Shown piece by piece: positions 4,901 to 63,602 of a stretch of DNA of 64,000 bases (positions are counted from its first letter, which is position 1; each line of letters opens with the position of its first letter). Source of the DNA: Macrostomum lignano (taxonomy: Eukaryota); NCBI GenBank assembly GCA_002269645.1, contig NIVC01000426.1, positions 1-64,000 on the forward strand, read 5' to 3'. The notes below the pieces were generated by a model, which saw only the letters and a list, made by a program, of their open reading frames with translations, was not told the origin of the DNA and ran no database searches. The position numbers were made by a program, and so were the translations under genes.

Positions 4901-7900
4901 TGAAGTCCCATTTTACAACATAGAAGTTCCACTTTGATTTGACAGTTTGTGGGTCACTGATTTATGTATGATTTATGTCTGCCTCATGTACATGATGTAT
5001 CCCTAATATATGTCAGCCTTTATGTATTTTTAATCAAGGTTCTTCATCTCTGGCTCTGCATTTAAAGCGTTCGTAAAGAAAAACCTAGTAAGGCTTTTGA
5101 TTCTGATGAATTTTCACTGTCTTAAAATTGGTTTCACTGTCAGTTTTTATCTGTTTGTGTATTCACAGCGTCTAACGAGCAACTACCTGTGTTCACACTG
5201 CTGTCGCCAGCTGTCATATTGTTAACTTTATAGTATGTACATGCAAAAGTACATTTCATTGGAAGAGCATAGTGCTGTTAGTTCATGGTTAACACAAAAG
5301 TACATGACGCACTTCTACCCCATATATAAACAGATTGGACTCAGCGAATCGCTGAAAATCGACGGAGATAAAGAAACGGTGCTATGGAAGTCTGAGACAG
5401 CAAAGCGGCTGGTTGCAAAAGCGAAGCAGATGCGAAAGCAGCAGCAACAGCAGCAGCAGCAGCAGCAACAACAGCTGCAATATCAGCTGGCCAGAAGACC
5501 GGCGGTAAGACCAATTTAGTGCAGAAGTCGTTCTGTGATATGAAACTTTAAAACGAATGCGATTAAAGGATTTGTTAAATGATATCAAAGAAATAAACTT
5601 GCATTTTTATATATGTGAAGGAAAATGTCGGATTGGCTAATGTTCATTGTCAGGGGGAAGCAAAGTATCGGAGTAACCAATGTACATTGCTTGGGGGAAG
5701 AAAAATACGGAGTGGCCAATGTACATCGCTAGGTCGCTAGGGGGGGGTGGAGAAAAAATATCGGAGTGGTCAATGTACCTTGCTTGGGGAAGGAAAATAT
5801 CGGTGTCGCTAATGTAAATCGCTAGAGGGAAAGAACAAATCAGTGTGGCTAATGTACATCGCTAGGGGAAGGAAAATATAGGAGTGGCTAATGTACATCG
5901 CTAGAGGGAAGGAAAATATAGGAGTGGCTAATGTACACTGCTTGGGGGAAGGAAAATAGAGGAGTGACTAATGTACATCGCTAGCGGAAAGAAAAAGAAG
6001 AGTATTTGAGTCAAGAACTTGTGTTTTAGGAAGAAAAAGAGAACAAATCAAGTACGCTCGTAAATAGCTAATTGGAGAAGTAAATTTTCGATGAGTAGAG
6101 GAAATTAGTCAATATTTTTCCTAAATCTGTCATCACTAAGGACTCCGCCAAGTCCGGCGCCACAGAGTTCTCAGCCGCGTCTTCCGGGGGAACTGGCAGC
6201 GGTGGCAGCGGCAGCGACTTGACCGTGAGAGACTCGGACCTCGAGGAGACTCGAGCTCGAATTCGCGGCATCTGCGATTCCTGGCTGGAGGCATACAGGC
6301 AGCGCCTGGGTGTCGCTCCTCCAGCACCGCCGCCACCGTCGCAGCCCCAGCAGCTGCCGCTGTCATCGAGGACGCCGAGGCCGGTTCAGTCGGCCGCCCC
6401 GGCGACGGCTCAGCGCAGCTCCACCGCGGGACGGCGCTCCGTCCAGGCGCCGCCGCGGTTGCCCTCGGCGCCACCGACTGCCGCGTCTGGCGTCGGCGTC
6501 GGCGCGCTTCGACAGTCGGCGCCAGCGGCGCCATCGACTGCGACGAGCGCCACAGCGGCGGCGTCGGCCAACTCCCTGGCCGAAGCCCTGGAGTCTGCGG
6601 CGTGTCCGACCACAGCCAGGCAGCTGCTGATCGCGGCGGGGGCTGCTGGCGGAACTTCCGGCTTTGTTGGCTTGAATCGATGCGGATGCGGCCTTCAGGT
6701 GAGCCTAGCAAGCGTTTTTGTGCGCTTCCCTCTGCTATCCAATGTGTGGAACTGCTTCCCTCCGCTATCCAATGTGTGAAACTGCTTCCCTCCGCTATCC
6801 AATAAGTGGAACTGCTTCCCTCCGCTATCCAATGTGTGGAACTGCTTCCCTCTGCTATCCAATGAGTGGAACTGTTTCCCTCCGCTATCCAATGTGTGGA
6901 ACTGCTTCCCTCCGCTATCCAATGTGTGGAACTGCTTCCCTCCGCTATCCAATGTGTGGAACTGCTTCCCTCCGCTATCCAATGTGTGGAACTGCTTCCC
7001 TCCGCTATCCAATGTGTGGAACTGCTTCCCTCCGCTATCCAATGTGTGGAACTGCTTCCCTCCGCTATCCAATAAGTGGAACTGCTTCCCTCCGCTATCC
7101 AATAAGTGGAACTGCTTCCCTCCGCTATCCAATGTGTGGAACTGCTTCCCTCCGCTATCCAATGTGTGGAACTGCTTCCCTCCGCTATCCAATGTGTGGA
7201 ACTGCTTCCCTCTGCTATCCAATGAGTGGAACTGTTTCCTTCCCCTTTCCAATGTGTGGAACTGCTTCCCTCCGCTATCCAATGTGTGGAACTGCTTCCC
7301 TCCGCTATCCAATGTGTGGAACTGCTTCCCTCTGCTATCCAATGTATGGAACTGCTTCCCTCCGCTATCCAATGTGTGGAACTGCTTCCCTCTGCTATCC
7401 AATGAGTGGAACTGTTTCCCTCCGCTATCCAATGTGTGGAACTGCTTCCCTCCGCTATCCAATGTGTGGAACTGCTTCCCTCCGCTATCCAATGTGTGGA
7501 ACTGCTTCCCTCCGCTATCCAATGTGTGGAACTGCTTCCCTCTGCTATCCAATGTATGGAACTGCTTCCCTCCGCTATCCAATGTGTGGAACTGCTTCCC
7601 TCCGCTATCCAATAAGTGGAACTGCTTCCCTCCGCTATCCAATGTGTGGAACTGCTTCCCTTCGATAAATAATGTGTTAAAATTTTTCCCTCCGCTCTCC
7701 ACTGTCTCACCGTCTTCACCCTAAAGGTCCCCAGCCTGACGGACCTCGAGCTCGACGCGTTCATCGAGGCGCAGGGCCGGCGAAATCCCGATCAACTCTT
7801 GGTTGTCATGGTAACGCACTCCAATTCCGACTCGTCAGAGGCGGCGCGCCGCGCCGATTCCCTGCTGCGCCAGTACGCCTCAGCTAATAGAAATCGGCGC

Positions 7901-13843: not shown

Positions 13844-18000
<4,157 letters not shown>

Positions 18001-19770: not shown

Positions 19771-23344
<3,574 letters not shown>

Positions 23345-23789
23345 CTCAGTCAGTCTTTCGGTGAATAAAAGAGAGTCTAGCAAGATTTGAACAAAACTGG
23401 CTCGGTGGGAATTGCCCCAGCCCTGCTTTGGGCCATTTTATATCCATAGCACCCCCTGTGCAGCTGGCGGCATTGGGCCTTGAATTGGTCCGGCAGCAAC
23501 CACCCCAACATAAGCCGGCCCAGCATTTCAAGCTGCGTTACCTTGGCAACAGTAAGCATAACATAGCTCTGTTTCGTAAATAGAAGCATTTAGCATTAAG
23601 TTGTAACAGTTTTCGCTATAAATGCAATACAAAATACTTGAGGTCTTAACTTAAACAGTGTGGCACTGAAGTATTGAATTATGGCCCCAGTGATAAGAGA
23701 GCGCGGGGTCTATGTATCCGACCGTGGCGCCCCGCAAAAAAACCGTGACCGTGACCCTGCATCTAAAACCATGGTGCCCCCATGACGCC

Positions 23790-25926: not shown

Positions 25927-46808
<20,882 letters not shown>

Positions 46809-49715: not shown

Positions 49716-50201
49716 TCAACCAGAAGTGGCGGCCGCGGTCCCGCTAGCACTAGCCGCCGACGGCTTAGCCTCCAGCCGGATGTGCAAAGCAGATTTCAGT
49801 CGCTGCCGCTGCTGCTGCCCCTGGGCGTCCTCATTCAGCTCGTGCAGCAGTCGGTCTGTACAAGCTACGGTGGAGGTGTACACAGCCGGCTGGCTGGTCA
49901 GCTCATCGGCCAGCTGCAGGGCCAGATTGGCCGCTCTGGGCACAGCGGCGCCGAGCCCGTGCACCCAGCACAGGTGAGGCGGCCGGCGGAGCAGCCTGCG
50001 GCAGCGCAGCAGCTGGGCTGGGAAGTTGGTTCGCTTAGTCACGTAGACATCGAATCCGCGCTGCGGCAGGCGGGGAGGCAGGCAGGAGATCAGGCGGGAC
50101 TCCTCGGCGTCCATTAGGTCGGCTAGGGGATTCTCTTTGGCCGCGGCGGCTGCGGCGTCGGGAGTCGGCGAGGTGGCGACGGGCTTGGCTGATGAGCTCA
50201 T
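49716..50201 (-). CDS. POP7: RNase P/MRP subunit p20 (Rpp20, Alba-like), intronless
   Basis: LPPRLPQRGFDVYVTKRTNFPAQLLRC..VHGLGAAVPRAANLALQL..TSTV..DRL..KSALHIRL matches the Rpp20 pattern (LPSRLPRRPNDIYVNMKTDFKAQLARC..IHGLGLAINRAINIALQL..NTSTV..NSAIHIRV). First ATG is at 50201. Confidence 0.88.
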   Translation of the reverse strand: MSSSAKPVATSPTPDAAAAAAKENPLADLMDAEESRLISCLPPRLPQRGFDVYVTKRTNFPAQLLRCRRLLRRPPHLCWVHGLGAAVPRAANLALQLADELTSQPAVYTSTVACTDRLLHELNEDAQGQQQRQRLKSALHIRLEAKPSAASASGTAAATSG

Positions 50202-50308
50202 GCCGAGTGCAACGATTCTAAGAGTTGATGGATTGATTATCACTGGGGATCAATGGAGATTATTTGGAACTGTTTATGATTTTCGGTAGACACTCGGGAC
50301 ACCAGAAT

Positions 50309-51404
50309 TCACAGGGTGCCTCTTGGAAGACTGAACGATAGGCGATCGCCAAGCTCGCCCCAGGTGGGCCGGTACACCTGCGGGGGTTGCGACGGAGAGT
50401 GCGGGTGGTTTAAGAAATTCTGCAATAGATCAGAGAGCAAGAGATTAGATTAGGGGGAGAGATCAGAGAGCAAGAGATTAGATTAAGGCGAGAGATCAGA
50501 GAGCAAGAGATTATATTAAGGCGAGAGATCAGAGAGCAAGAGATTATATTAAGGCGAGAGATCAGAGAGCAAGAGATTATATTAAGGCGAGAGATCAGAG
50601 AGCAAGAGATTATATTAAGGCGAGAGATCAGAGAGCAAGAGATTAGATTAAGGCGAGAGATCAGAGAGCAAGAGATTAGATTAAGGCGAGAGATCAGAGA
50701 GCAAGAGATTATATTAAGGCGAGAGATCAGAGAGCAAGAGATTAGATTAAGGCGAGAGATCAGAGAGCAAGAGATTATATTAAGGCGAGAGATCAGAGAG
50801 CAAGAGATTATATTAAGGCGAGAGATCAGAGAGCAAGAGATTATATTAAGGCGAGAGATCAGAGAGCAAGAGATTAGATTAAGGCGAGAGATCAGAGAGC
50901 AAGAGATTAGATTAGCGAGAGAGATCAGAGATCAGAGAGCACGAGATTAGATTAGCGAGAGAGATCAGAGATAACGAGATTAGATTAGCGAGAGAGATCA
51001 GAGATCAGAGAGCACGAGATTAGATTAGCGAGAGAGATTAAACCAAGGGAGAGATCAGACATCAAGCTATAGACTGGGCAGTGGTTACTAAAGGAAAGAT
51101 CAAATAGAATAAGAGACCAATGGTATATATAAAGCTATCAAATAGACTAAAAAAGCATTGCACACACCTGATACACGCAGAACCAGGTAAGCAGTGCCAC
51201 AGTCCAGATGGCGCTGCCAATGCCGCTAATAATAACCAGACGCCGGATCTGCGCCTGTTCCGGATAGGCCGGCGCTAGGAAGGCCTCGCGAAAAAACCAA
51301 GCAAAGTTGGTTAGCCAAAGGAATGGCAATAGGAATGCGCCGCCGATAGTGTATTTGCGACAGATGTTGAGCTTGTCAGCACCGCTAGACTTAGATAGAT
51401 CCAT
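50309..51404 (-). CDS. PSENEN: Gamma-secretase subunit PEN-2, 101 aa
   Basis: Exons 51404-51168 and 50377-50309 give MDLSKSSGADKLNICRKYTIGGAFLLPFLWLTNFAWFFREAF..YQ|VYRPTWGELGDRLSFSLPRGTL*, colinear with PEN-2. Confidence 0.95.
50420..51060. repeat. 33 bp minisatellite filling the PSENEN intron
   Basis: GATCAGAGAGCAAGAGATTATATTAAGGCGAGA tandem copies. Confidence 0.93.
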
Positions 51405-51433
51405 GCGCCAGCGGGAGTGTCGGCGCCGGCGGC

Positions 51434-54400
51434 TTAGGGGCGATGCCCATGGATGTTTAGGGGCGATGCTCATGGATGCTTAGGTGGGCGATGCTCATGG
51501 ATGCTTAGGGGCGATTCTCATGGATGTTTAGGTGGGCGATGCTCATGGATGCTTAGGGGCGATGCCCATGGATGTTTAGGGGCGATGCTCATGGATGTTT
51601 AGGTGGGCGATGCTCATGGATGCTTAGGTGGGCGATGCTCATGGATGCTTAGGGGCGATGCTCATGGATGCTTAGGTGGGCGATGCTCATGGATGCTTAG
51701 GTGGGCGATGCTCATGGATGCTTAGGGGCGATGCTCATGGATGCTTAGGTGGGCGATGCTCATGGATGCTTAGGTGGGCGATGCTCATGGATGCTTAGGG
51801 GCGATTCTCATGGATGTTTAGGTGGGCGATGCTCATGGATGCTTAGGTGGGCGATGCTCATGGATGCTTAGGTGGGCGATGCTCATGGATGCTTAGGTGG
51901 GCGATGCTCATGGATGCTTAGGTGGGCGATGCTCATGGATGCTTAGGTGGGCGATGCTCATGGATGCTTAGGGGCGATTCTCATGGATGTTTAGGTGGGC
52001 GATGCTCATGGATGCTTAGGTGGGCGATGCTCATGGATGCTTAGGTGGGCGATGCTCATGGATGCTTAGGTGGGCGATGCTCATGGATGCTTAGGTGGGC
52101 GATGCTCATGGATGCTTAGGTGGGCGATGCTCATGGATGCTTAGGTGGGCGATTCTCATGGATGCTTAGGTGGGCGATGCTCATGGATGCTTAGGTGGGC
52201 GATGCTCATGGATGCTTAGGTGGGCGATGCTCATGGATGCTTAGGTGGGCGATGCTCATGGATGCTTAGGTGGGCGATGCTCATGGATGCTTAGGTGGGC
52301 GATGCTCATGGATGCTTAGGTGGGCGATGCTCATGGATGCTTAGGTGGGCGATGCTCATGGATGCTTAGGGGCGATTCTCATGGATGTTTAGGTGGGCGA
52401 TGCTCATGGATGCTTAGGTGGGCGATGCTCATGGATGCTTAGGTGGGCGATGCTCATGGATGCTTAGGTGGGCGATGCTCATGGATGCTTAGGGGCGATT
52501 CTCATGGATGTTTAGGTGGGCGATGCTCATGGATGCTTAGGTGGGCGATGCTCATGGATGCTTAGGTGGGCGATGCTCATGGATGCTTAGGTGGGCGATG
52601 CTCATGGATGCTTAGGTGGGCGATGCTCATGGATGCTTAGGTGGGCGATGCTCATGGATGCTTAGGTGGGCGATGCTCATGGATGCTTAGGTGGGCGATG
52701 CTCATGGATGCTTAGGGGCGATTCTCATGGATGTTTAGGTGGGCGATGCTCATGGATGCTTAGGTGGGCGATGCTCATGGATGCTTAGGGGCGATTCTCA
52801 TGGATGTTTAGGTGGGCGATGCTCATGGATGCTTAGGTGGGCGATGCTCATGGATGCTTAGGTGGGCGATGCTCATGGATGCTTAGGTGGGCGATGCTCA
52901 TGGATGCTTAGGGGCGATTCTCATGGATGTTTAGGTGGGCGATGCTCATGGATGCTTAGGTGGGCGATGCTCATGGATGCTTAGGTGGGCGATGCCCATG
53001 GATGTTTAGGGGCGATGCTCATGGATGCTTAGGTGGGCGATGCTCATGGATGCTTAGGGGCGATGCTCATGGATGCTTAGGTGCGATTCTCATGGATGCT
53101 TAGGGGCGATTCTCATGGATGTTTAGGTGGGCGATGCTCATGGATGCTTAGGTGGGCGATGCTCATGGATGCTTAGGTGGGCGATGCTCATGGATGCTTA
53201 GGTGGGCGATGCTCATGGATGCTTAGGGGCGATTCTCATGGATGTTTAGGTGGGCGATGCTCATGGATGCTTAGGTGGGCGATGCTCATGGATGCTTAGG
53301 TGGGCGATGCCCATGGATGTTTAGGGGCGATGCTCATGGATGCTTAGGTGGGCGATGCTCATGGATGCTTAGGGGCGATTCTCATGGATGTTTAGGTGGG
53401 CGATGCTCATGGATGCTTAGGTGGGCGATGCTCATGGATGCTTAGGTGGGCGATGCCCATGGATGTTTAGGGGCGATGCTCATGGATGCTTAGGTGGGCG
53501 ATGCCCATGGATGCTTAGGGGCGATTCTCATGGATGTTTAGGTGGGCGATGCTCATGGATGCTTAGGTGGGCGATGCTCATGGATGCTTAGGTGGGCGAT
53601 GCTCATGGATGCTTAGGTGGGCGATGCTCATGGATGCTTAGGGGCGATTCTCATGGATGTTTAGGTGGGCGATGCTCATGGATGCTTAGGTGGGCGATGC
53701 TCATGGATGCTTAGGTGGGCGATGCTCATGGATGCTTAGGTGGGCGATGCTCATGGATGCTTAGGGGCGATTCTCATGGATGTTTAGGTGGGCGATGCTC
53801 ATGGATGCTTAGGTGGGCGATGCTCATGGATGCTTAGGTGGGCGATGCTCATGGATGCTTAGGGGCAATTCTCATGGATGTTTAGGTGGGCGATGCTCAT
53901 GGATGCTTAGGTGGGCGATGCTCATGGATGCTTAGGTGGGCGATGCTCATGGATGCTTACGTGGGCGATGCTCATGGATGCTTAGGTGGGCGATGCTCAT
54001 GGATGCTTAGGTGGGCGATGCTCATGGATGCTTAGGTGGGCGATTCTCATGGATGCTTAGGTGGGCGATGCTCATGGATGCTTAGGTGGGCGATGCTCAT
54101 GGATGCTTAGGGGCGATTCTCATGGATGTTTAGGTGGGCGATGCTCATGGATGCTTAGGTGGGCGATGCTCATGGATGCTTAGGTGGGCGATGCTCATGG
54201 ATGCTTAGGTGGGCGATGCTCATGGATGCTTAGGTGGGCGATGCTCATGGATGCTTAGGTGGGCGATGCTCATGGATGCTTAGGTGGGCGATGCTCATGG
54301 ATGCTTAGGTGGGCGATTCTCATGGATGCTTAGGTGGGCGATGCTCATGGATGCTTAGGTGGGCGATGCTCATGGATGCTTAGGTGGGCGATGCTCATGG

Positions 54401-55662
54401 ATGCTTAGGTGGGCGATGCTCATGGATGCTTAGGTGGGCGATGCTCATGGATGCTTAGGTGGGCGATGCTCATGGATGCTTAGGTGGGCGATGCTCATGG
54501 ATGCTTAGGTGGGCGATGCTCATGGATGCTTAGGTGGGCGATGCTCATGGATGCTTAGGTGGGCGATGCTCATGGATGCTTAGGTGGGCGATGCTCATGG
54601 ATGCTTAGGTGGGCGATGCTCATGGATGCTTAGGTGGGCGATGCTCATGGATGCTTAGGTGGGCGATGCTCATGGATGCTTAGGTGGGCGATGCTCATGG
54701 ATGCTTAGGTGGGCGATTCTCATGGATGCTTAGGTGGGCGATGCTCATGGATGCTTAGGTGGGCGATGCTCATGGATGCTTAGGTGGGCGATGCTCATGG
54801 ATGCTTAGGTGGGCGATGCTCATGGATGCTTAGGTGGGCGATGCTCATGGATGCTTAGGTGGGCGATGCTCATGGATGCTTAGGTGGGCGATGCTCATGG
54901 ATGCTTAGGTGGGCGATGCTCATGGATGCTTAGGTGGGCGATGCTCATGGATGCTTAGGTGGGCGATTCTCATGGATGCTTAGGTGGGCGATTCTCATGG
55001 ATGTTTAGGTGGGCGATGCTCATGGATGCTTAGGTGGGCGATGCTCATGGATGCTTAGGTGGGCGATGCTCATGGATGCTTAGGTGGGCGATGCTCATGG
55101 ATGCTTAGGTGGGCGATGCTCATGGATGCTTAGGTGGGCGATTCTCATGGATGCTTAGGTGGGCGATGCCCATGGATGTTTAGGTGGGCGATTCTCATGG
55201 ATGTTTAGGGGCGATGCTCATGGATGTTTAGGTGGGCGATTCTCATGGAGTGATTCTCACGGACGTTTCGGGGCGATTCTCACGAATGTTTCGGGGCGAT
55301 TCTCACGAATGTTTCGGGGCGATGCTCATGGGTGTTTCAGGGCGATGCTCATGGGTGTTTAGGGGCGATGCTCATGGGTGTTTAGGTGGGCGATTCTCAT
55401 GGAGTGATTCTCACGGACGTTTCGGGGCGATTCTCACGGACGTTTCGGGGCGATTCTCACGAATGTTTCGGGGCGATTCTCACGGATGTTTCAGGGCGAT
55501 GCTCATGGGTGTTTAGGGGCGATGCTCATGGGTGTTTAGGGGCGATGCTCATGGGTGTTTAGGGGCGATGCTCATGGGTGTTTAGGGGCGATGCTCATGG
55601 GTGTTTAGGTGGACGATGCTCACGGATGTTTAGGGTGATTTTCATGGATGTTTAGGGGCGAT
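51434..55662. repeat. 4.2 kb, 24-25 bp minisatellite GATGCTCATGGATGCTTAGGTGGGC
   Basis: Roughly 170 copies between RPL13A and PSENEN. Confidence 0.97.
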
Positions 55663-55877: not shown

Positions 55878-57031
55878 TCACTTGTGCCCGAAGGACTCGA
55901 TAATCTTCTGATACTTGGCCACCCGATCCTTGACCTTCTCGACGGCCTTGGAGCGAAGCTGGCGGTCGCGCAGCTGGCGCTTGTGAAAGTGAGCCGATTT
56001 CACCTTGCGCCTGCGCTCCAGGGTGCCAATCACGCCCTGGTATTTCCAGCCGACCTCGTGCGACAGGCGGCCGAGGACGCAGAACTTGCGGCGGGTCTTC
56101 AGCCGGAGGCACTTGAGCGCCGACGGCACCACCTGACGCTTGGCCTTGTCGTAGGGGCTGGGGATGCCCTCGAACACCTGGACGTGTGTGACGGCGGGTG
56201 TTGCGAAGTGATGGTGATAGAATTTCGGAGGAATCCGGGAGGGGATGCTAAGGATGGAGAATCGGGGAATTAAGGGATGCTGAGGATGGAGAACCGGGAA
56301 GGGGATGCTGAGGATGGAGAACCGGAAAGGGGATGCTGAGGATAGAGAATCGAAGAGAGGATGCAGCTGACGGAGAACAGGGGACGGGAATCTGAGGAGG
56401 AGAATCGGAGAGGGGATGCAGGTGATGGAGAGCCGGGGAGGGGAATCTGAGGATGGAGAATCGGAGAGGGGATGCAGGTGATGGAGAGCCGGGGAGGGGA
56501 ATCTGAGGATGGAGAATCGGAGAGGGGATGCAGGTGATGGAGAGCCGGGGAGGGGAATCTGAGGGTGAAGAATCGGAGAGAGGATGCAGCTGATGCAGCT
56601 GATGGAGAACCGGGGAGGGGAATCTGAGGATGGAGAATCGGATGGGATGATGCGGATGGAGAACCGGGGAGGGGATGCAGCGGATGGAGGATGGGGCCAG
56701 ACATGGAACAGCTGCTCACCTTCAAACGGTCAAGAGCCTCGGCGCCCCTGGCGAGCTTGTGCGGCAGCATGCCCCGCACGGTGCGCCAGAAGATCTTAGA
56801 CGGGGCGCGGAAGTGGTACGGTCCCCGACTGGGTTTAGTGTTAAGCCGCTTGCGCAGAAACTCGTGGTAGCGAGTCTTGTTGCGAAAGAAGGAGCCGGAG
56901 ATGTTGATGCCCTCGCAGCGGACAACTACAACGCGCTGGCCGAGGAGCAGCGTCTTGGCGACCACGGCAGCCAGACGGCCGAGAAGGTGGCCGCGAGCGT
57001 CGATAATCAACGGGCTGGATTTGAATCCCAT
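55878..57031 (-). CDS. RPL13A: 60S ribosomal protein L13a (uL13), 203 aa
   Basis: Exons 57031-56720 and 56177-55878: [53 protein letters not shown]|[19 protein letters not shown]. Confidence 0.97.
56195..56700. repeat. Degenerate minisatellite in the RPL13A intron (GGGGATGCTGAGGATGGAGAATCGG)
   Basis: Imperfect tandem copies. Confidence 0.85.
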
Positions 57032-57189
57032 TGCGGCATGCAATTGGGAGTTTTTTTAGGTTGGATTTGTATAGGAATCAAAGTTAGTGAGCTGTGCGGC
57101 AGTGGCTGCCTTTAGCAGATAAGCTCTATTTCTACTAACTATGAAAAAGCACATCAGATAAACCAAAGGCTGAGTAGACAAAACTAAAA

Positions 57190-58928: not shown

Positions 58929-61900
58929 TCAACTTTCGTGATTAGCACTAGCGGCCGCCGCGGCCGAACCGGAGCTCTCAGTGTTGGCCTCCGGTTTCAT
59001 CGCCGGGAAGAACAGCACCTCCTTGATGTTGTTGGTGTCGGTCAGGAACATAGCAAGCCGGTCCAGTCCCAGACCCCAGCCGGCAGTTGGCGGCAGGCCC
59101 ATCTCTAATGCGCCGAGAAAAGTCTCGTCAACAAACATGGCCTCTTCGTCGCCTTGCGCTTTAGCAGCAGCCTGGGCTTCGAATAGCTGGCGTTGCACTA
59201 TGGGGTCGTTCAATTCCGTATAGGCGTTGCAAATCTCGCGTCGGCAGGCGAACAGTTCGAAGCGTTCCGTCAGGCCTGGGATGGACCGGTGCCACTTAGC
59301 CAGGGGAGACATGATCTGGCAATGGGGATGCGCGCGATTCTGTGCCGCAAGACTCAATTCACAGTACGTAAGACAGCATCTGAATTGCACGGTTCAAGCT
59401 AGCGCCTTCTTAACCATAAGTACCTTGGGATGCCCGCTACCCCTCCCTCATCAGTACCTCTGATGCTTGAGAATGCCCGCTACCCCTAATCAGTCCCTCT
59501 GATGCTTGAGAATGCCCGCTACCCCTAATCAGTCCCTCTGATGCTTGAGAATGCCCGCTACCCCTCATCAGTCCCTCTGATGCTTGAGAATGCCCGCTAC
59601 CCCTCATCAGTCCCTCTGATGTTTGAGATGCCTGCTAACCCCCTCATCAGTCCCTCTGATGTTTGAGATGCCTGCTAACCCCCTCATCAGTCCCTCTGAT
59701 GTTTGAGATGCCTGCTAACCCCCTCATCAGTCCCTCTGATGTTTGAGATGCCTGCTAACCCCCTCATCAGTCCCTGTGATGTTTGAGATGCCTGCTAACC
59801 CCCTCATCAGTCCCTCTGATGTTTGAGATGCCTGCTAACCCCCTCATCAGTCCCTCTGATGTTTGAGATGCCTGCTAACCCCCTCATCAGTCCCTCTGAT
59901 GCTTGAGATGCCTGCTAACCCCCTCATCAGTCCCTCTGATGTTTGAGCTGCCTGCTAACCCCCTCATCAGTCCCTCTGATGTTTGAGATGCCTGCTAACC
60001 CCCTCATCAGTCCCTCTGATGTTTGAGATGCCTGCTAACCCCCTCATCAGTCTCTCTGATGTTTGAGATGCCTTCTAACCCCCTCATCAGTCCCTCTGAT
60101 GTTTGAGCTGCCTGCTAACCCCCTCATCAGTCCCTCTGATGTTTGAGCTGCCGGCTAACCCCCTCATCAGTCTCTCTGATGTTTGAGATGCCGGCTAACC
60201 CCCTCATCAGTCTCTCTGATGTTTGAGATGCCTGCTAACCCCCTCATCAGTCTCTCTGATGTTTGAGATGCCGGCTAACCCCCTCATCAGTCCCTCTGAT
60301 GTTTGAGATGCCTGCTAACCCCCTTATCAGTCCCTCTGATGTTTGAGATGCCTGCTAACCCCCTCATCAGTCCCTCTGATGCTTGAGATGCCTGCTAACC
60401 CCCTCATCAGTCCCTCTGATGTTTGAGCTGCCTGCTAACCCCCTCATCAGTCCCTCTGATGTTTGAGATGCCTGCTAACCCCCTCATCAGTCCCTCTGAT
60501 GTTTGAGATGCCTGCTAACCCCCTCATCAGTCCCTCTGATGTTTGAGATGCCTGCTAACCCCCTCATCAGTCCCTCTGATGTTTGAGATGCCTGCTAACC
60601 CCCTCATCAGTCTCTCTGATGTTTGAGATGCCGGCTAACCCCCTCATCAGTCCCTCTGATGTCTGAGATGCCCGCTAACCCTCAGGTATCGATCGCTAAT
60701 AAAATGAACTCACCTGCGGATGGTTAATCAGGAAAGTGGGATTAATACACTCAGTCTCTAAGAAGTCGCCAGCCAGTTTGTCCAACAGGCGGGGCACTGT
60801 CCTGGGCGGCTGGCATTCTACGTTGCGCTCAACACAAAGCCGGTCGAATAGAGCCCTGTTAATCGGGGTCAGGGAGACTGGCATACAGGTATGATTAAGA
60901 TTAAGAGATTGGGGGATAAAAGGTGATCAGTAAAATGTAATAGAGACAATAAAGCATTGCTAATGAAGCAGTGTTAAAGGAAGGGTTAAGAGCTAGAGTG
61001 AATAATGGAAAAGTGAAGGGTCATGATGAGTGAGTGAAAGATCTGGATGAAGGGTGAGGGTGAAGGGTCTGGATGAAGGGTGAAGGTGAGGGTGAAGGGT
61101 CTGGATGAAGGGTGAGAGTGCAAGGTCTAGATAAAGGGTGAGGGTGAAGGGTGAAGGGTCTGGATGAAGGGTGAGAGTGCAAGGTCTAGATAAAGGGTGA
61201 GGGTGAAGGGTGAAGGGTCTGGATGAAGGGTGAGGGTGAAAGGTCTGGATGAAGGGTGAGGGTGAATGGTCTGGATGAAGGGTGAGGGTGAAGGGTCTGG
61301 ATGAAGAATGAGAGTGCAAGGTCTGGATAAAGGGTGAGGGTGAAGGGTCTGGATGAAGGGTGAGAGTGCAAGGTCTGGATAAAGGGTGAGGGTGAAGGGT
61401 CTGGATGAAGGGTGAGAGTGCAAGGTCTAGATAAAGGGTGAGGGTGAAGGGTGAAGGGTCTGGATGAAGGGTGAGGGTGAATGGTCTGGATGAAGGGTGA
61501 GAGTGCAAGGCCTAGATAAAGGGTGAGGGTGAAGGGTGAAGGGTCTGGATGAAGGGTGAGGGTGAATGGTCTGGATGAAGGGTGAGGGTCTGAATGAAGG
61601 GTGAGAGTGGCGGACAGAATATATGGTCAAAACCGCATGCCTCAACCTGTCAAATAATTAATACCTGGCTTCCTCCGTGCCCAGCGTATCCGGGGGAGGC
61701 AGCGCCACCCCAAGCCGTTTGCCCAGCTCGGCGTACAGATCCAACCGACGGAACGGCGGCGTGAAGTCCACCTCCCATTCCACACCTTCCTCCGGATGAT
61801 AGACGATCTTGTGAGATCCGGTGAGCTCCTTGACTAAGCCGGACAGAAGCTGCTCAGTGATGGCCATGAGATCATTGTAATCAGCGTAGGCCATGTAGAA

Positions 61901-63602
61901 CTCGCACATGGTGAACTCGGGATTATGAGTCATGTCGATGCCTTCATTGCGAAATTGTCGGCCAATTTCGTACACCCGATCGAAGCCGCCAACGATCAGC
62001 TGTTTGAGGAACAGCTCGGGAGCGACTCGAAGGTACAGATCTCGGTCAAGCTCGTTGTGATGCGTCACAAATGGCTTAGCAGTGGCGCCGCCAGGGATCA
62101 CGTTCATGATGGGTGTCTCAACCTCCAGGAAGCCCATCTGGTCTAGGAACCTGCGCCAGATGAATGAGAGTTAGCACTGTCTTGAAACTGAGTAGCTTTG
62201 AGTGATAATAATTCAAAATTCTACCCTAGAAGATAACGTTGCAGGATTAAAGAGGTCTGCATCCTCAGGACTCTGAGTGAAGAATCTTGAGCTCTTGAGA
62301 GTCACGGGATGAAGAATCTCACCCTTAGAGAGCCACAGGATTAAGAATCTCACCCTTAGAGAGCAGCAGGATGAAGAATCTCACCCTTAGAGAGCAGCAG
62401 GATTAAGAATCTCACCCCTAGAGAGCAGCAGGATGAAGAATCTCACCCTTAAGGCCGCAGGATTAAGAATCTCACCCTTTAGAGAGCCGCAGAATGGAGA
62501 ATCTCACCCCAAGAGAGCAGCAGGATGAAGAATTTCACTCTTAGAGAGCCGCAGGATAAGAATCTCACCCTTAGAGAGCCGCAGGAGAAGAATCTCACCC
62601 TTAGAGAGCCGCAGGAGAAGAATCTCACCCTTAGAGCCGCAGGATAAGAATCTCACCCTTAGAGAGCCGCAGGAGAAGAATCTCACCCTTAGAGCCGCAG
62701 GATAAGAATCTCACCCTTAGAGAGCCGCAGGATTAAGAATCTCACCCTTAGAGAGCCACAATATTAAAGAATCTCACCCTAGAGAGCAGCAGAATGAAGA
62801 ATCTCACCCTTTGAGAGCAGCAGGATTAAGAATCTCATCCTTAGAGAGCCGCAGGATTAAGAATCTCACCCTTAGAGAGCCACAATATTAAAGAATCTAA
62901 CCCCTAGAGAGCAGCAGAATGAAGAATCTCACCCTTTGAGAGGCACAGGATTAAGAATCTCATTCTTAGAGAGCCGCAGGATTAAGAATCTCACCCTTAG
63001 AGAGCCACAATATTAAAGAATCTCACCCTAGAGAGCAGCAGAATGAAGAATCTCACCCTTTGAGAGGCACAGGATTAAGAATTTCATCCTTAGAGAACCG
63101 CATGATTAAGAATCTCATCCTTAGAGAGCCGCAGGATTAAGAATCTCACCCTTGGAGCATATTCGATTCTGGGGGTCAAAGTTTTAGCTATAGTATTGGC
63201 TATTTAAAAATTTACGAACCTGCGAACATAGGTAATAATCCGAGCCCTCATGATGAACCGCTGTCGCACCTCAGAGTTAATGATCAGATCCAAATGTCGC
63301 TGTCTGAATCGAGTCTCCTTATCCTTGAGGCCATAGTGCAGATGCGGCAGCTGGCGAAGGCACGGTGCCAGCAGGCGCATCTCAGTAGGCAGGATGCTCA
63401 GCTCGCCCTTAGCCGACCGAGTCGGCTTGCCAATCACGCCGACAATGTCGCCTCGCTTGAGCTCCTCGTTGGTCTTGTGAAAGTCCGGCCCAGTGTAATT
63501 GCCAGCGTTGGCTAGAATTTGCAGCTTAGTGCCCTCGCCGCGGATATCGTAGAAAATCAGCTTTGAGCCCTGGCGGTGTAAATTTGGTAGTAGTATTAAT
63601 AT

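Follow-up and report, generated by a model that had tools for sequence, protein, structure and literature searches.

How POP7, the gene for the RNase P/MRP subunit Rpp20, comes to be expressed is the question raised by a short interval of Macrostomum lignano DNA, in which this gene begins 107 nt downstream of the stop codon of PSENEN (encoding PEN-2) on the same strand. The interval lies on contig NIVC01000426.1 (GCA_002269645.1), of which we analyzed positions 1 to 64,000 (64,000 nt; hereafter the window, whose coordinates are used throughout). An earlier note on this DNA had proposed that the two genes form an operon resolved by spliced-leader (SL) trans-splicing, with POP7 receiving an SL at 50217. 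PSENEN-POP7 is, in our view, probably one of the ordinary SL operons of M. lignano, with its acceptor at 50242 or 50217. The operon part of the proposal is strengthened by a class of operons already documented in the species and by the retention of the pair and its spacing in two relatives, whereas the placement of the SL at 50217 lacks direct support, the acceptor at 50242 being at least as good.

The identities of both genes are clear. The spliced PSENEN protein matches the Pfam PEN-2 family (E=8e-33), and the intronless 161-aa open reading frame (ORF) of POP7 matches Pfam Rpp20 (E=1.7e-11), with homologues found by a homologue search carrying the name ribonuclease P subunit p20. A protein identical to POP7 is annotated on NIVC01000575.1 of the same assembly (Mlig_3_7, the NIVC assembly of Wudarski et al. 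2017; PMC5730564), and BOX15_Mlig007866g1 of M. lignano is 99% identical to it. No exact protein record was found for a 175-aa, GTG-extended version of the POP7 ORF, and Macrostomum proteins were not among the matches of the PSENEN homologue search. The two genes are immediate neighbors on the minus strand with no ORF in the gap between them, and the stop codon, start codon, and spacing given in the earlier note are exact to the base. The hexamer CATAAA and the acceptor-like sequence ending in CTCTTAG, which it had placed in the gap, are likewise found at their minus-strand positions (Table 1). The PSENEN intron consists mostly of a 33-bp tandem repeat (50427-51038, as determined by TRF). The spacer is repeat-free, although tandem repeats make up 40% of the window.

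M. lignano uses a single 35-nt SL, CGGTCTCTTACTGCGAAGACTCAATTTATTGCATG, whose 3' end (...CAATTTATTGCATG) terminates in ATG (Ustyantsev & Berezikov 2021; PMC8629364). The SL is received by about 30% of the genes, about 15% of genes lie in operons, and 75% of the operons contain two genes, with genes conserved with human being enriched among those that are trans-spliced (PMC8629364). Once adjusted for repeats, the distances that separate trans-spliced genes show a peak close to 100 bp (PMC8629364), and the 107-nt spacer falls within the published operon distance (repeat-adjusted <1 kb, mode about 100 bp). Two human-conserved genes on the same strand, 107 nt apart, in a species with operon spacers of ~100 bp, thus fit a documented class. 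For M. lignano, we infer that one upstream promoter would drive PSENEN and POP7 as neighboring cistrons, perhaps with RPL13A in the same transcription unit, that the precursor would be cut and polyadenylated after PSENEN, and that the 35-nt SL would be trans-spliced to an acceptor in the 107-nt spacer, giving a monocistronic POP7 mRNA.

The arrangement recurs in two relatives recovered from Logan assemblies, here termed species 2 (contigs L002 and L003; SRR28338165/6) and species 3 (L004 and L005; SRR30276812/04), whose POP7 proteins are 75% and 60% identical to that of M. lignano, respectively. PSENEN, spacer, and POP7 follow one another in the same order and orientation on three of the four contigs, with spacers of 120 nt in species 2 and 101 nt in species 3; the tight linkage of the pair is conserved across three Macrostomum-like species. 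A more distant locus with a POP7 homologue (L009) was dropped from the comparison, as Pfam revealed no PEN-2 neighbor. The PSENEN coding sequences (CDSs) of the relatives align gap-free with that of M. lignano through the position of its exon junction, at nucleotide identities of 85% and 81%, and the absence of the intron on these contigs suggests either a spliced dicistronic RNA or species in which the gene has no intron. All three dicistronic contigs start within the first 100 nt of the PSENEN CDS, and two end shortly after a poly(A)-like hexamer downstream of POP7, as transcript ends would (L002 9 nt after AATAAA, L005 17 nt after TATAAA). Judged by these sequence features, the contigs are likely of RNA origin, and PSENEN and POP7 are likely co-transcribed.

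Four AG dinucleotides occur in the M. lignano spacer, two of them with pyrimidine tracts (50243 and 50218). At the first of these, which would open an exon at 50242, 80% of the upstream nucleotides are pyrimidines, five of six positions match [T/C]TNCAG, the top SL acceptor motif of M. lignano (PMC8629364), and the terminal ATG of the SL would be followed by a TGA, yielding a one-codon upstream ORF (uORF). At the second, with an exon from 50217, the upstream sequence is 67% pyrimidines, TAG stands in place of CAG, and an out-of-frame ORF of 61 codons would run from the SL ATG over POP7. The two sites align with TCTCAG and CTCTAG, respectively, in species 2 (sites about 23-25 nt apart), and ATCCAG sits 10 nt before the POP7 ATG in species 3; in both relatives, an ORF opened by the SL ATG would be short and end before the POP7 ATG for every plausible acceptor. 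An out-of-frame SL AUG is common in Schistosoma mansoni, however, where a passage of PMC9851317 citing Cheng et al. 2006 puts the SL AUG in frame in just 28% of trans-spliced mRNAs, and the frame argument therefore merely tilts the choice toward 50242. On the features of the two sites, 50242 would be slightly preferred over 50217 as the SL acceptor.

Several observations weigh against an SL operon at this locus. The poly(A)-signal and acceptor motifs of the spacer are no commoner than chance: of the spacer shuffles, 46% held a variant of the poly(A) signal, 76% a YAG preceded by pyrimidines, and 21% the two in the correct order. CATAAA and the acceptor motifs add little. No conserved poly(A) signal was found in the spacers of the three species: CATAAA is absent from species 2 and 3, the species 2 spacer holds ACTAAA only (14 nt before the ATG), and the species 3 spacer has none of the listed poly(A)-signal variants. 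None of the four contigs of the relatives carries an SL, all having spacer sequence upstream of POP7, and if these contigs are genomic, they show synteny alone. An SL-joined POP7 transcript or read was not found for M. lignano or its relatives, the exact look-up of the POP7 protein returning genomic NCBI contigs only. The PSENEN CDS is also unannotated in all three GenBank copies of the locus in Mlig_3_7 (the window copy, L011, and two others, L001 and L006). POP7 and RPL13A bear the consecutive accessions PAA64498 and PAA64499 with no PSENEN CDS between them, and POP7 itself is uncalled on NIVC01000426.1. The missing PSENEN CDS may reflect a pipeline that never cut the unit at the SL site, or the stated filtering for submission.

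The final such observation concerns the lack of ATG in the spacers. As the earlier note had claimed for the 107-nt gap, no upstream ATG is present in M. lignano (50202-50308), nor is one present in the 120-nt and 101-nt spacers of species 2 (L002 277-396) and species 3 (L005 299-399). The joint chance of three ATG-free spacers is 0.22 x 0.21 x 0.11, or about 0.005, a post hoc statistic based on two to three lineages. ATG and the CpG-containing ACG are the only trinucleotides missing from the spacers of all three species. The ATG-free spacer is left unexplained by a simple operon model and is the sole hint of something beyond the textbook mechanism. An outron plus 3' untranslated region (UTR) has no need to be ATG-free while a scanned leader does, which keeps two other explanations alive, namely a translated dicistronic mRNA and a separate POP7 promoter.

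In the former, which we regard as unlikely, the mature message would be a stable dicistronic mRNA without a separate poly(A) site for PSENEN, and POP7 would be translated through termination and reinitiation across the ATG-free spacer. In a variant, the SL would be joined to the PSENEN intron acceptor (50378/50377), where the SL ATG is in frame with exon 2, so that a uORF of 23 codons would precede the ATG-free spacer and POP7. The three contigs described above are what such an mRNA would look like, each running from a PSENEN without its intron through the spacer to POP7, with two ending past poly(A)-like hexamers and none bearing an SL. The ATG-free spacers of three species, which lack any canonical or conserved poly(A) signal, and the absence of a separate PSENEN CDS from GenBank also agree with it, and the sharing of acceptors between cis- and trans-splicing, common in flatworms (PMC12582326), favors the variant. 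Multi-gene precursors, however, make up about 7% of the assembled M. lignano transcripts (PMC5730564), and dicistronic contigs are therefore no proof of a mature mRNA, and the ATG-free statistic carries the reservation given above. M. lignano further possesses a pervasive SL mechanism that solves the translation of a downstream gene. Reinitiation after an ORF of 101 codons is inefficient in eukaryotes, which also counts against this explanation. A mature dicistronic mRNA conserved across the genus, with POP7 reinitiated after either the PSENEN ORF or the SL-made 23-codon uORF, would be no more probable.

Similarly doubtful is the possibility that PSENEN and POP7 are independent, close-packed genes, with POP7 expressed without trans-splicing from a promoter or start in PSENEN exon 2, the PSENEN intron, or the spacer. 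CATAAA, one mismatch from TATAAA, would then serve as the TATA-like element of a start near 50245, lying about 30 nt upstream of it, and the lack of ATG would suit a conventional 5' UTR over much of the spacer. About 70% of the genes in M. lignano receive no SL (PMC8629364), and the species 2 contig L003, which includes just the last 27 nt of the spacer ahead of the POP7 ATG, bears none either. Set against this, pairs that include a non-trans-spliced gene have a single distance mode lacking the ~100-bp peak, which is found only in trans-spliced M. lignano pairs (PMC8629364). CATAAA is not kept in the relatives, the species 3 spacer being purine-rich and devoid of a TATA-like element, and the contigs of both species run unbroken from PSENEN into POP7.

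The weakest explanation stems from an older annotation. UniProt entry A0A1I8IIK8 (P0014), a 265-aa "Gamma-secretase subunit PEN-2", is a chimera of PEN-2 and Rpp20 that reads ...PRGTL-IVALG-MSSS, corresponding to an intron of 50312..50218 that splices out the stop codon and the spacer. The earlier note had seen no obvious donor here; the GT at 50312-50311 in fact forms, with the AG at 50218, the in-frame 95-nt intron used in this entry. A genuine cis-spliced PEN-2::Rpp20 fusion, although in frame in M. lignano and, through an equivalent GTGAG..CAG pair, in species 3, is very improbable and was rejected, as the junction is out of frame in species 2, the contigs of the relatives keep the "intron", the newer, evidence-based annotation has a separate 161-aa POP7, and there is no biological rationale for linking a membrane subunit of gamma-secretase with a nuclear subunit of RNase P. 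The fused model is probably a gene-prediction artefact, chimeric models being a known artefact of operons and taken as an operon signature in flatworms (PMC12582326). The fused model is counted here among the evidence for the SL operon.

Table 1. Features of the PSENEN-POP7 locus and of its upstream neighbors in the window; a slash marks a splice boundary.
Feature	Position	Strand	Details
POP7 3' UTR ATTAAA	49684..49689	-	Likely poly(A) signal of the last gene, as read from the sequence
POP7 (RNase P/MRP subunit Rpp20) CDS	49716..50201	-	Intronless, 161 aa; ATG 50201-50199, stop TGA 49718-49716
PSENEN-POP7 spacer	50202..50308	-	107 nt from stop to ATG; no ATG, no tandem repeats
Candidate SL acceptor (earlier note)	50218..50219	-	caaCTCTTAG/AATCG; exon from 50217, 5' UTR 16 nt
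Candidate SL acceptor	50243..50244	-	ccattgatCCCCAG/TGATAATC (CCCCAG/); exon from 50242, 5' UTR 41 nt
CATAAA	50273..50278	-	Possible weak PSENEN poly(A) signal; alternatively TATA-like
PSENEN exon 2	50309..50377	-	Peptide VYRPTWGELGDRLSFSLPRGTL, then stop TGA at 50311-50309
Potential cis-splice donor GT	50311..50312	-	CT/GTGAAT; overlaps the PSENEN stop codon, pairs with AG at 50218
PSENEN intron	50378..51167	-	790 nt, phase 0, GT..AG boundaries
PSENEN (PEN-2) exon 1	51168..51404	-	Codons 1-79, ATG at 51404; translation and splice junction CAG/GTGTGTGC
Tandem array, 23-25-bp repeats	51438..55662	.	4.2 kb, between RPL13A and PSENEN, ends 33 nt upstream of the PSENEN ATG; TRF
RPL13A (uL13)	55878..57031	-	Exons 57031-56720 and 56177-55878; 203 aa; Pfam Ribosomal_L13
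Lysyl-tRNA synthetase	62137..58929	-	Upstream, same strand as PSENEN and POP7

The two further copies of the locus, on NIVC01000575.1 (L001) and NIVC01001745.1 (L006), are near-identical to that of the window. Together, the three copies fit the known duplication in the DV1 line (PMC8629364). They are 98-100% identical around the locus and differ by 1 nt in the spacer, and thus offer no power for phylogenetic footprinting. The repeat array between RPL13A and PSENEN does vary, measuring about 4.2 kb in the window versus about 0.8 kb in L001 (1051-1865) and L006 (~6090-6900), which represents either a large copy-number variation or an assembly collapse. From RPL13A to PSENEN there is about 215 nt of unique sequence, the array, and a further 33 nt, a repeat-adjusted distance of about 250 nt. 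By the published repeat-adjusted criterion, RPL13A, PSENEN, and POP7 could be one operon, provided that PSENEN is trans-spliced.

A possible SL acceptor for PSENEN, CCCGCAG/GCGC, lies 4 nt before the PSENEN ATG in L001 (~1882-1892) and L006 (~6918-6928). The window copy instead reads CCCGCTG at 51408-51414 (minus strand), and may thus have lost the PSENEN acceptor. Further upstream, the last 8 nt of the SL (ATTGCATG) occur at 57037-57044 on the minus strand, 5 nt upstream of the RPL13A ATG, a single match versus 3.3 expected that we attribute to chance. The eLife 2016 supplement marks an RPL13A transcript, RNA1509_2265, as TRANSSPLICED. A paralogue of RPL13A that lacks introns, BOX15_Mlig015828g2 (211 aa, "partial"), is present at two other loci (6001-6636 in both L007 and L008), flanked by a Mat89Bb-domain gene and a kinase gene, and may be a retrocopy. 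The search with RPL13A itself matched M. lignano genomic entries and unrelated taxa only.

Scanned in full against Rfam with gathering thresholds, the window gave no match, and exact searches with the SL and with 3' portions of it revealed no SL RNA gene in the window or the loci. Elsewhere in the window, we noted a 696-bp array at 28510-29205 with a 12-bp unit, GCCCTAACCCTA, whose other strand alternates TTAGGG and CTAGGG and which looks interstitial telomere-like. A 272-bp unit is repeated 5.7 times at 99% identity at 15972-17509, between long GATA and TAGA microsatellites. On the minus strand, an ENPP-like gene (21067-23383; Pfam Phosphodiest, E=4e-31) has its exons split by ACAG microsatellites and 28-bp repeats, and ORFs at 40353-41182, in which Pfam places an RNase H domain at E=2e-4, short of the curated cut-off, are probably a retrotransposon fragment.

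Roughly 10,000 genes of M. lignano have already been placed in SL operons, to which PSENEN-POP7 would, if confirmed, add a single pair. No mention of the pair or its gene ids was found in the papers and supplements searched, nor by full-text search. For annotation, the value lies in a PSENEN gene left unannotated in three copies, a POP7 gene missing from the window's contig, and an older model that is wrongly fused. The persistence of the pair in three Macrostomum-like species could also make it a small test case of operon conservation in free-living flatworms.

Compared with known systems, the proposed locus resembles the SL2-type operons of Caenorhabditis elegans in that a polycistron with a short spacer would be resolved by upstream 3' end formation and a downstream SL. 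It differs in that a single SL serves M. lignano, which lacks a specialised SL2 (PMC8629364), and this places the locus outside the SL2 type. The likeness to C. elegans gaps of ~100 nt, drawn in the earlier note, holds for the shortness of the spacer but not for what is measured, which is the distance from poly(A) site to trans-splice site in C. elegans and the whole stop-to-ATG gap here. As that gap spans just 107 nt as a whole, any true intercistronic stretch would not exceed about 30-55 nt. A U-rich element was not identified.

In the SL1-type operons of C. elegans and those of Ciona, the poly(A) site abuts the acceptor (PMC12582326), and the same would apply here if CATAAA is the PSENEN signal, as cleavage 10-30 nt downstream of it would fall at or beside the CCCCAG acceptor at 50243; this likeness rests on a hexamer at chance level and a predicted PSENEN poly(A) site. 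Also comparable are the UbCRBP-enolase operon of S. mansoni and the other operons of parasitic flatworms (PMC12582326), which share an SL ending in AUG, a mostly two-gene makeup, and chimeric gene models, and whose intercistronic distances in S. mansoni have a median of 99 bp (PMC12582326). These belong to a different lineage and involve other gene pairs, the supplements of PMC12582326 containing no PEN-2 or Rpp20 entry.

The closest match is with the SL operons of M. lignano itself (PMC5730564; PMC8629364). The locus departs from them in that its best acceptor fits [T/C]TNCAG partly, that GenBank holds no PSENEN CDS, and that SL addition to POP7 is predicted here from sequence. It shares with them same-strand neighbors, a spacer of ~100 bp, human-conserved genes, and the two-gene type, and the swelling of the distance to the upstream RPL13A by tandem repeats is just as PMC8629364 describes.

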